Of a stretch of 39,393 bases of DNA, positions 14,026-14,128 are shown in pieces. Source of the DNA: Lepidodermella squamata (lineage: Eukaryota; Animalia; Gastrotricha); the NCBI GenBank assembly GCA_047495785.1, contig JBLDXI010000094.1, positions 1 to 39,393 of the forward strand, given 5' to 3'. Each line of letters begins with the position of its first letter. Positions within the stretch are counted from its first letter, which is position 1. Under the pieces are notes generated by a model. That model was not told the DNA's origin, ran no database searches, and worked only from the letters and a program-made list of their open reading frames with translations. A program made the translations under genes and the position numbers.

Positions 14026-14128
14026 TAAATATCTGCGATTGAATATTAAATTTTCTGAGGTTAGTATCAATACCACTTCGACTGCTGTCTATTAGAATGC
14101 GCGGCGTAAGCTTGCATTCTGTCAAGTG
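14026..14128 (+). ncRNA. SL-A: candidate spliced-leader-like small RNA gene, uninterrupted copy
   Basis: TAAATATCTGCG start shared with SL-B. GAG|GTTAGT donor at 14059/14060 in a stem-loop (ATTG/CAAT plus ATATTAA/TTAGTAT). 3' hairpin AGAATGC...GCATTCT. No canonical Sm site is visible. Confidence 0.45.

Follow-up and report, generated by a model that had tools for sequence, protein, structure and literature searches.

Spliced-leader (SL) RNA genes are a classic safe haven for LINEs. In the papers found, SL exons are described as LINE targets only for the early-branching CRE-type and NeSL elements with their restriction-like endonuclease (PMC4640811, PMC8869645), in agreement with what a preliminary description of the present locus had said of the known SL-targeting LINEs. 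Target-specific lineages with an APE endonuclease are named in the same sources as the R1 and Tx1 clades (PMC4640811, PMC8869645), and a 2024 review of rDNA and transposons contains nothing comparable in an rDNA spacer (PMC10946416). Here we analyze an SL gene in the rDNA spacer of the gastrotrich Lepidodermella squamata whose splice donor region is entered by three retroelement families, two of them LINEs of the APE type. What is new here is the APE-type endonuclease for an SL target, which has not been reported before in the literature found.

The window, a stretch of 39,393 nucleotides making up positions 1 to 39,393 of contig JBLDXI010000094.1 (assembly GCA_047495785.1), is part of an rDNA array. 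It contains three 18S-5.8S-28S units and five 5S genes, as identified with Rfam. The spacer of each unit carries, antisense to the rRNA genes, two small genes referred to here as SL-A and SL-B and then the 5S gene, in the order SL-A, SL-B, 5S, and the tandem target units are about 8.46 kb apart. At window 14751-15839 two rDNA units stand head to head. A 5S gene on the plus strand (14751-14868) is followed by a 28S remnant on the minus strand (15096-15472) comprising only the last ~377 nt of the gene, and the 5S gene of the plus-oriented unit lies on the minus strand at 15721-15839, its spacer joined to the 28S remnant near 15472-15720. The published L. squamata genome was obtained from phi29-amplified DNA, which forms chimeras; the assembly may derive from such DNA, and this inverted junction could be either a real inversion or a chimera of whole-genome amplification. 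The genome paper mentions neither SL genes nor elements in the rDNA. A motif of ~26 nt, GTCGCCAATGACCAYGTGCATGTGGT, precedes each 5S gene by ~30-55 nt and occurs once more close behind SL-A (sites at 14176-14205 and 14697-14722). Beyond the site behind SL-A, a block at 14296-14387 is kept in the contigs of another organism (run X3). The motif or the block may represent a promoter element or an additional gene for a small RNA.

The intact SL-A copy has a leader exon of 33 nt at 14027-14059 (plus strand), delimited by contig depth in run X2, and an intron-like part at 14060-14135 that starts with a GT donor at 14060-14061, was delimited from sequence and fold, and pairs back onto the exon. A second intact exon was found by motif search at 16532-16564 on the minus strand. 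SL-B has its leader exon at 14497-14527 (plus strand) and its GT donor at 14528-14529; the exon was placed by X2 depth and its 5' end by analogy with SL-A. Contigs of four public runs were placed on window 13700-14750. Those of run X1 cover this region evenly, as DNA would. Those of run X2, which is only guessed to be RNA and whose contigs cannot show true RNA ends, are distributed very differently: their summed depth is 424,217 in the bin 14024-14059, against 68 upstream and 13.7 beyond 14096. Depth falls to 4,533 in 14060-14095, about 1% of the value for the SL-A exon, and a second peak of 113,100 covers the SL-B bin 14492-14527, with 0 upstream. Hundreds of X2 contigs overlap 14027-14059 only, and their loose ends after 14059, the last base before the GT, run into heterogeneous sequences. 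In eight X2 contigs, foreign letters ending in a G run stand before 14027 and are presumably a cDNA adaptor. Since the X2 contigs pile onto 14027-14059 and stop at the GT, these 33 nt very probably function as a spliced leader found on many transcripts, and the same very probably holds for SL-B. The suggestion that the small gene is SL-like is thus borne out in a run guessed to be RNA, where it behaves as a real spliced-leader gene.

Other properties of the two genes can be summarized briefly. The predicted pairing of the SL-A exon with the start of its intron part is a feature also of other SL RNAs. Neither SL-A nor SL-B matches a curated SL family in Rfam at E values up to 10. A clear Sm consensus was not found in SL-A, and SL-B has AAUUUGAGG followed by a hairpin. 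The SL-B copy in the window has, at 14513, one T fewer than all X2 contigs and 11 X1 contigs, so the expressed SL-B is probably 32 nt long and the window copy a minor variant. Each rDNA unit has one SL-A gene, which makes about 490 copies, and diverged copies occur elsewhere in the genome. We found no report of trans-splicing in gastrotrichs in the literature.

Three fixed 3' junctions fall within the landing pad at 14048-14061 (plus strand) of the intact SL-A copy, whose empty site at 14041-14070 reads as it was quoted in the preliminary description. The first belongs to LINE-R, in which eight G (34375-34368) are followed on the minus strand by AATTTTCTGAGG from 34367, corresponding to 14048/14049. 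The SL-A remainder on its 3' side (34290-34367, minus strand) retains the final 11 exon nucleotides together with the donor and the intron part. The second is that of a 912-bp element at 24992-25903 (minus strand), which lies between two copies of TCTGA at 24987-24991 and 25904-25908; this duplication equals 14054-14058 of the intact copy, and the 3' junction maps to 14053/14054. The third is that of LINE-L, whose poly(A) at 5611-5620 is followed by TTAGTATC from 5621, corresponding to 14060/14061; its SL-A remainder (5621-5700, plus strand) therefore starts one base into the GT. All three junctions were confirmed at the positions first proposed. So was the orientation: the three elements run the same way as SL-A and 5S, antisense to 18S and 28S, that is, to Pol I transcription. 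Of the five SL-A copies in the window, three carry an insertion, and SL-B is never interrupted there; the three 28S genes match the Rfam model end to end and contain no insertion, as had been noted for their R1/R2 sites. The site motifs occur 4-5 times in the window, compared with 0.01-0.05 times expected in shuffled sequence.

LINE-L occupies positions 1-5620 on the plus strand, its 5' side being cut off by the contig end, and encodes ORF1 (17-2533) and ORF2 (2518-5304), the latter with APE and RT domains. Other LINE-L copies extend ~465 bp further 5', and the element is therefore about 6.1 kb long. The additional sequence includes 246-bp tandem repeats, two to three per copy (L061-L090), which are a candidate internal promoter of LINE-L's own, comparable to the monomers of mouse L1. 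It had been suggested that the elements possibly borrow the promoter of the small gene. Reading of LINE-L from the SL-A promoter is not supported: in full-length copies the element has a defined 5' end at one fixed base behind the duplication and itself includes no SL exon. The 838-residue ORF1 of LINE-L has no Pfam match at E 0.01; a motif in it, LRLRGG, resembling the tail of ubiquitin, was pointed out in the first reading of the sequence.

LINE-R is represented in the window by a 5'-truncated copy at 34368-39309 (minus strand), with a G8 tail (34368-34375), ORF2 with APE and RT domains (35270-37786) and ORF1 with a CCHC knuckle (38044-39267). The copy is truncated at 39309, inside ORF1, and the N-terminus of its ORF2 is shorter than in relatives. 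The element exceeds 5 kb and ends in poly(G), a tail that to our knowledge is unusual for a LINE. The 84 AT-rich bp between the truncated LINE-R and the contig end (39310-39393) match none of the other sequences compared.

Both LINEs have two ORFs, and both ORF2s match Exo_endo_phos_2, Exo_endo_phos and RVT_1 in Pfam, with the APE domain N-terminal, as expected from their earlier designation as APE-type. ORF2 ends ~150 residues past the RT, and no further domain was found there. LINE-L and LINE-R had also been called unrelated. That does not hold: LINE-L ORF2 is 27% identical to that of a LINE-R relative over 885 residues (E 2e-82), and the two share a supported group. This group comes from a quick maximum-likelihood analysis of 83 proteins, an unrooted tree built with no reference clades and with its other members chosen as hits to LINE-R, in which a set of 20 proteins with an SH-aLRT of 100 unites the LINE-L family, the LINE-R family, a group 35% identical to LINE-R, and P0022/P0062. 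By sequence comparison, LINE-L and LINE-R are thus best described as distantly related APE-type LINE lineages. Their label as Jockey-like is unproven. The only named distant hits carry automatic labels such as 'X-element' and 'BS', at 23-30% identity, and stand outside the group of 20. A sequence search of the PDB returned only generic matches to L1 and R2 RTs; the endonuclease structures of R1Bm and TRAS1 were not among the hits, and the search is of no help for clade assignment.

The 912-bp element can be described as a non-coding retroposon: its head (25860-25903) derives from SL-A, its tail is (TC)n, and its ORFs are short and of low complexity only. Over the first 44 nt it is 91% identical to SL-A, a match that sets in two bases upstream of the mapped SL-A 5' end and extends past the donor into intron sequence. 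Outside this head, no similarity to LINE-L or LINE-R was found. It had been regarded as a parasite, a view that finds no support in its 3' end, which resembles that of neither LINE-L nor LINE-R. In a nematode, the leader itself was reportedly recognized as an internal promoter element by Hannon and colleagues in 1990. If the nematode case holds in L. squamata, the head of the 912-bp element could carry part of a promoter.

To assess site specificity, the final 300 bp of each LINE were searched against the genome of L. squamata itself, and 30 flanks were read for each. LINE-L ends in SL-A-type sequence in 28 of the 30, and in 27 the 3' end is followed by the same SL-A base. One copy sits in SL-A with a small target deletion and one in a variant SL-A-like sequence; two lie elsewhere, one of which has its own 11-bp duplication. 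The set of LINE-R types, which includes subfamilies only 81-85% identical in the 3' region, ends in SL-A-type sequence in 25 of 30. These comprise 20 copies in the SL-A of the rDNA, four in diverged SL-A-like genes on contigs C125, C7, C4 and C17 (the last three chromosome-scale) and one (L049) in the SL-like head of another copy of the 912-bp element; the other five are elsewhere. For the 912-bp element, a 150-bp probe over the 3' junction matches full length at 40 of 40 scored places, with 90-100% identity. Most of the flanks read are thus SL-A junctions for both LINEs, as had been predicted, and the insertions in diverged genes on chromosome-scale contigs and in the 912-bp head agree with the earlier view that the small gene itself is the target. 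A few copies lie outside SL-A (L016, L020, L032, L043, L050, L055 and L056), so target specificity is strong but not absolute. One of them, L032 (G000:C119, ~16225), is a LINE-R copy with a 3' end identical to that in the window and a 26-G tail; its flank, read by eye, looks like a conserved stretch of 18S rRNA, which would make L032 an off-target insertion in the small-subunit gene.

Exact patterns were also counted across the genome, a rough measure because sequence variants are missed. The LINE-L junction occurs 40 times, and distinct LINE-R junctions number about 41. SL-A 28-mers across the site are intact in 382 cases, a figure that also takes in the sequence just before LINE-L insertions, compared with 487 downstream halves of SL-A; the SL-B donor is intact 497 times. 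Of the roughly 490 SL-A copies, about a quarter carry an insertion. Hits at the SL-B donor are essentially absent, and the sparing of SL-B first seen in the window thus extends to the whole genome.

Proteins 47-74% identical to those of the two LINEs are encoded on short contigs from other samples, and the elements that encode them sit at equivalent positions of different SL-like genes. The related contigs belong to ERZ27313165, SRR22038626, SRR31730562, SRR23086389 and JGI 3300015615. Relatives of LINE-L (52-74% identity) end at the donor of such genes. For example, two of them (L097 and L098) have a different SL-like gene on the 5' side, with about a dozen intron bases kept before the start of the element. 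In L097 the sequence after the poly(A) tail starts at the GT donor of the SL-like gene; in L098 the SL-like gene adjoins a 5S gene and the contig ends within the poly(A) tail; a third relative, L099, has an SL-B-like gene downstream. In the relatives of LINE-R (L100, L101 and L102; 47-53% identity), a G-tail is followed by 9-11 nt of SL-like exon and then the GT donor. These three share with LINE-R a 3' stem structure (34376-34455, minus strand) that shows a few compensatory changes and precedes the variable poly(G) tail. A further contig (L103) ends 16 nt past its G-tail. No recognizable SL-like target was found for a relative at 28% identity (L104), and no target is readable for P0022 (L105) and P0019 (L106), one being nested in another copy and the other lying on a contig that ends too early.

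The site might be a hotspot for structural or transcriptional reasons: as an imperfect palindrome within a heavily transcribed small-RNA gene, it could often be cut by unspecific endonucleases. Pairing is possible between the exon and the first part of the intron, which makes the DNA an imperfect inverted repeat, and three different elements do enter within the same 12 bp. We nevertheless consider this unlikely. Within each family, dozens of copies share a single exact insertion base. SL-B, which is of similar build and is also expressed in the run guessed to be RNA, is not hit. Moreover, relatives with a different target sequence have retained the nick position with respect to the donor.

Tandem arrays can also spread insertions without any new integration, and a few old insertions could have been multiplied by unequal crossing-over and gene conversion in the rDNA. 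The targets do lie in tandem units, and some neighboring copies share both tail length and flank (e.g., L037-L040 and L051-L054); such identical neighbors have probably been multiplied together with their rDNA units. The copies as a whole tell a different story. Tail lengths vary from 7 to 21 for A-tails and from 6 to 26 for G-tails, and two copies of the 912-bp element are one unit apart in the length of their (TC) tails. LINE-L has at least five different truncation points, all accompanied by a 13-15 bp duplication that starts at 14061, and a full-length copy (L072) has an intact leader, the donor and 13 nt of intron before the fixed 5' end of the element. Truncated LINE-R copies have target-site duplications of 8-13 bp (8 bp in L057/58, 13 bp in L031), the 912-bp element has one of 5 bp, and several SL-A flank variants carry insertions. 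Given real target-site duplications and copies that are not alike in tail, 5' truncation point or flank variant, the insertions are repeated events, and amplification of the array alone does not explain them. Insertions in diverged SL genes outside the rDNA and in the 912-bp head, as well as distant relatives at the same place in other organisms, likewise speak against multiplication within the array, which we consider very unlikely as the source of the pattern. That the junctions are artefacts of assembly or whole-genome amplification is scarcely credible, in spite of the phi29-amplified DNA behind the published genome and the inverted rDNA junction in the window, as chimeras give neither target-site duplications nor tails nor the same base dozens of times, a loose end of G16 stands at 14049 in contigs of X1 (a run listed separately, possibly from the same sample as the assembly), and the same arrangement is present in related contigs from other samples.

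The preferred reading, to which we assign a probability of about 85%, is that three retroelement families insert at SL-A by target-primed reverse transcription, each at its own fixed base, and that the sequence of the SL gene is what is recognized. According to this model, LINE-L (~6.1 kb, with a poly(A) tail), LINE-R (>5 kb, with a poly(G) tail) and the non-autonomous 912-bp retroposon would each make the first nick at a fixed base of their own, within the 12 bp at the end of the leader and the donor. A second nick 5 to 15 bp downstream would then give rise to the target-site duplication. Recognition would depend on the SL gene sequence rather than on the rDNA context, and the multicopy SL gene would absorb the losses, as 28S does for R1 and R2. 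Specificity would come from the APE domain of ORF2, perhaps together with other parts of ORF2. Judging from the sequence, annealing of the tail does not set the site, since the implied primer 3' ends cannot pair with A or G tails.

Somewhat short of an even chance, and accordingly put forward as tentative, is a broader reading in which LINE-L and LINE-R represent two branches, each with its own nick position, of an old APE-type clade that tracks SL RNA genes across species. The 912-bp element would then be the first retroposon with an SL RNA head, the head perhaps bringing an internal promoter element behind the resident SL promoter, and the whole would amount to an APE-based reinvention of the CRE/NeSL lifestyle. 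If this is true, a lifestyle like that of CRE and NeSL has arisen independently on an APE basis, in a phylum for which no report of trans-splicing was found. APE-type elements that hit SL genes with single-base precision would constitute a second, independent solution next to that of the elements with a restriction-like endonuclease. The locus also offers a natural system for studying how an APE domain is aimed, with three families using three bases within 12 bp, a spared paralogue (SL-B) 470 bp away and diverged relatives on different SL sequences elsewhere. How an APE domain is aimed bears in turn on tools for targeted insertion. In addition, the finding provides independent evidence for SL trans-splicing in a gastrotrich and places its SL genes in the rDNA spacer, adjoining 5S.

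Among described non-coding elements, the 912-bp retroposon is most usefully compared with SINEU, whose heads derive from U1 and U2 snRNA (PMC4494074). Both are short, non-coding and target-specific and have a head copied from a small RNA gene that normally uses an upstream promoter of the Pol II type, and the transcription of SINEU is likewise unexplained (PMC4494074). The 912-bp element differs in that its head comes from SL RNA and that it inserts into the very gene from which its head is derived. It is also longer, and no partner LINE sharing its 3' tail is recognized when it is compared with LINE-L and LINE-R.

R2 is another resident of rDNA that is tolerated through the redundancy of the array and depends on the context of its target (PMC10946416). 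It uses a restriction-like endonuclease, however, and sits in 28S, where it is co-transcribed by Pol I, whereas the elements described here occupy a small gene in the spacer and run antisense to Pol I. The target itself is shared with CRE1, CRE2, SLACS and CZAR of trypanosomatids and NeSL-1 of nematodes, which also insert site-specifically in the SL exon of multicopy SL genes (PMC4640811, PMC8869645). In those elements a restriction-like endonuclease follows the RT, whereas LINE-L and LINE-R have two ORFs and an N-terminal APE domain, with no further domain found after the RT. They are thus not members of the CRE or NeSL groups, and because the endonuclease is different, the shared SL target is convergent.

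In function, the closest likeness is to the APE LINEs of the R1 and Tx1 clades, such as R1, TRAS/SART, Keno in U2 and Mutsu in 5S. Like LINE-L and LINE-R, these combine APE and RT, hit an exact base of a multicopy RNA gene, leave fixed target-site duplications and form old lineages that keep their target (PMC4640811, PMC4494074). The likeness described here is one of function; the target here is the SL RNA gene, listed there only for elements with a restriction-like endonuclease, and LINE-R has a poly(G) tail. By their domains, their exact target base and the length of their duplications, LINE-L and LINE-R belong to the functional class of sequence-specific APE-type non-LTR retrotransposons.
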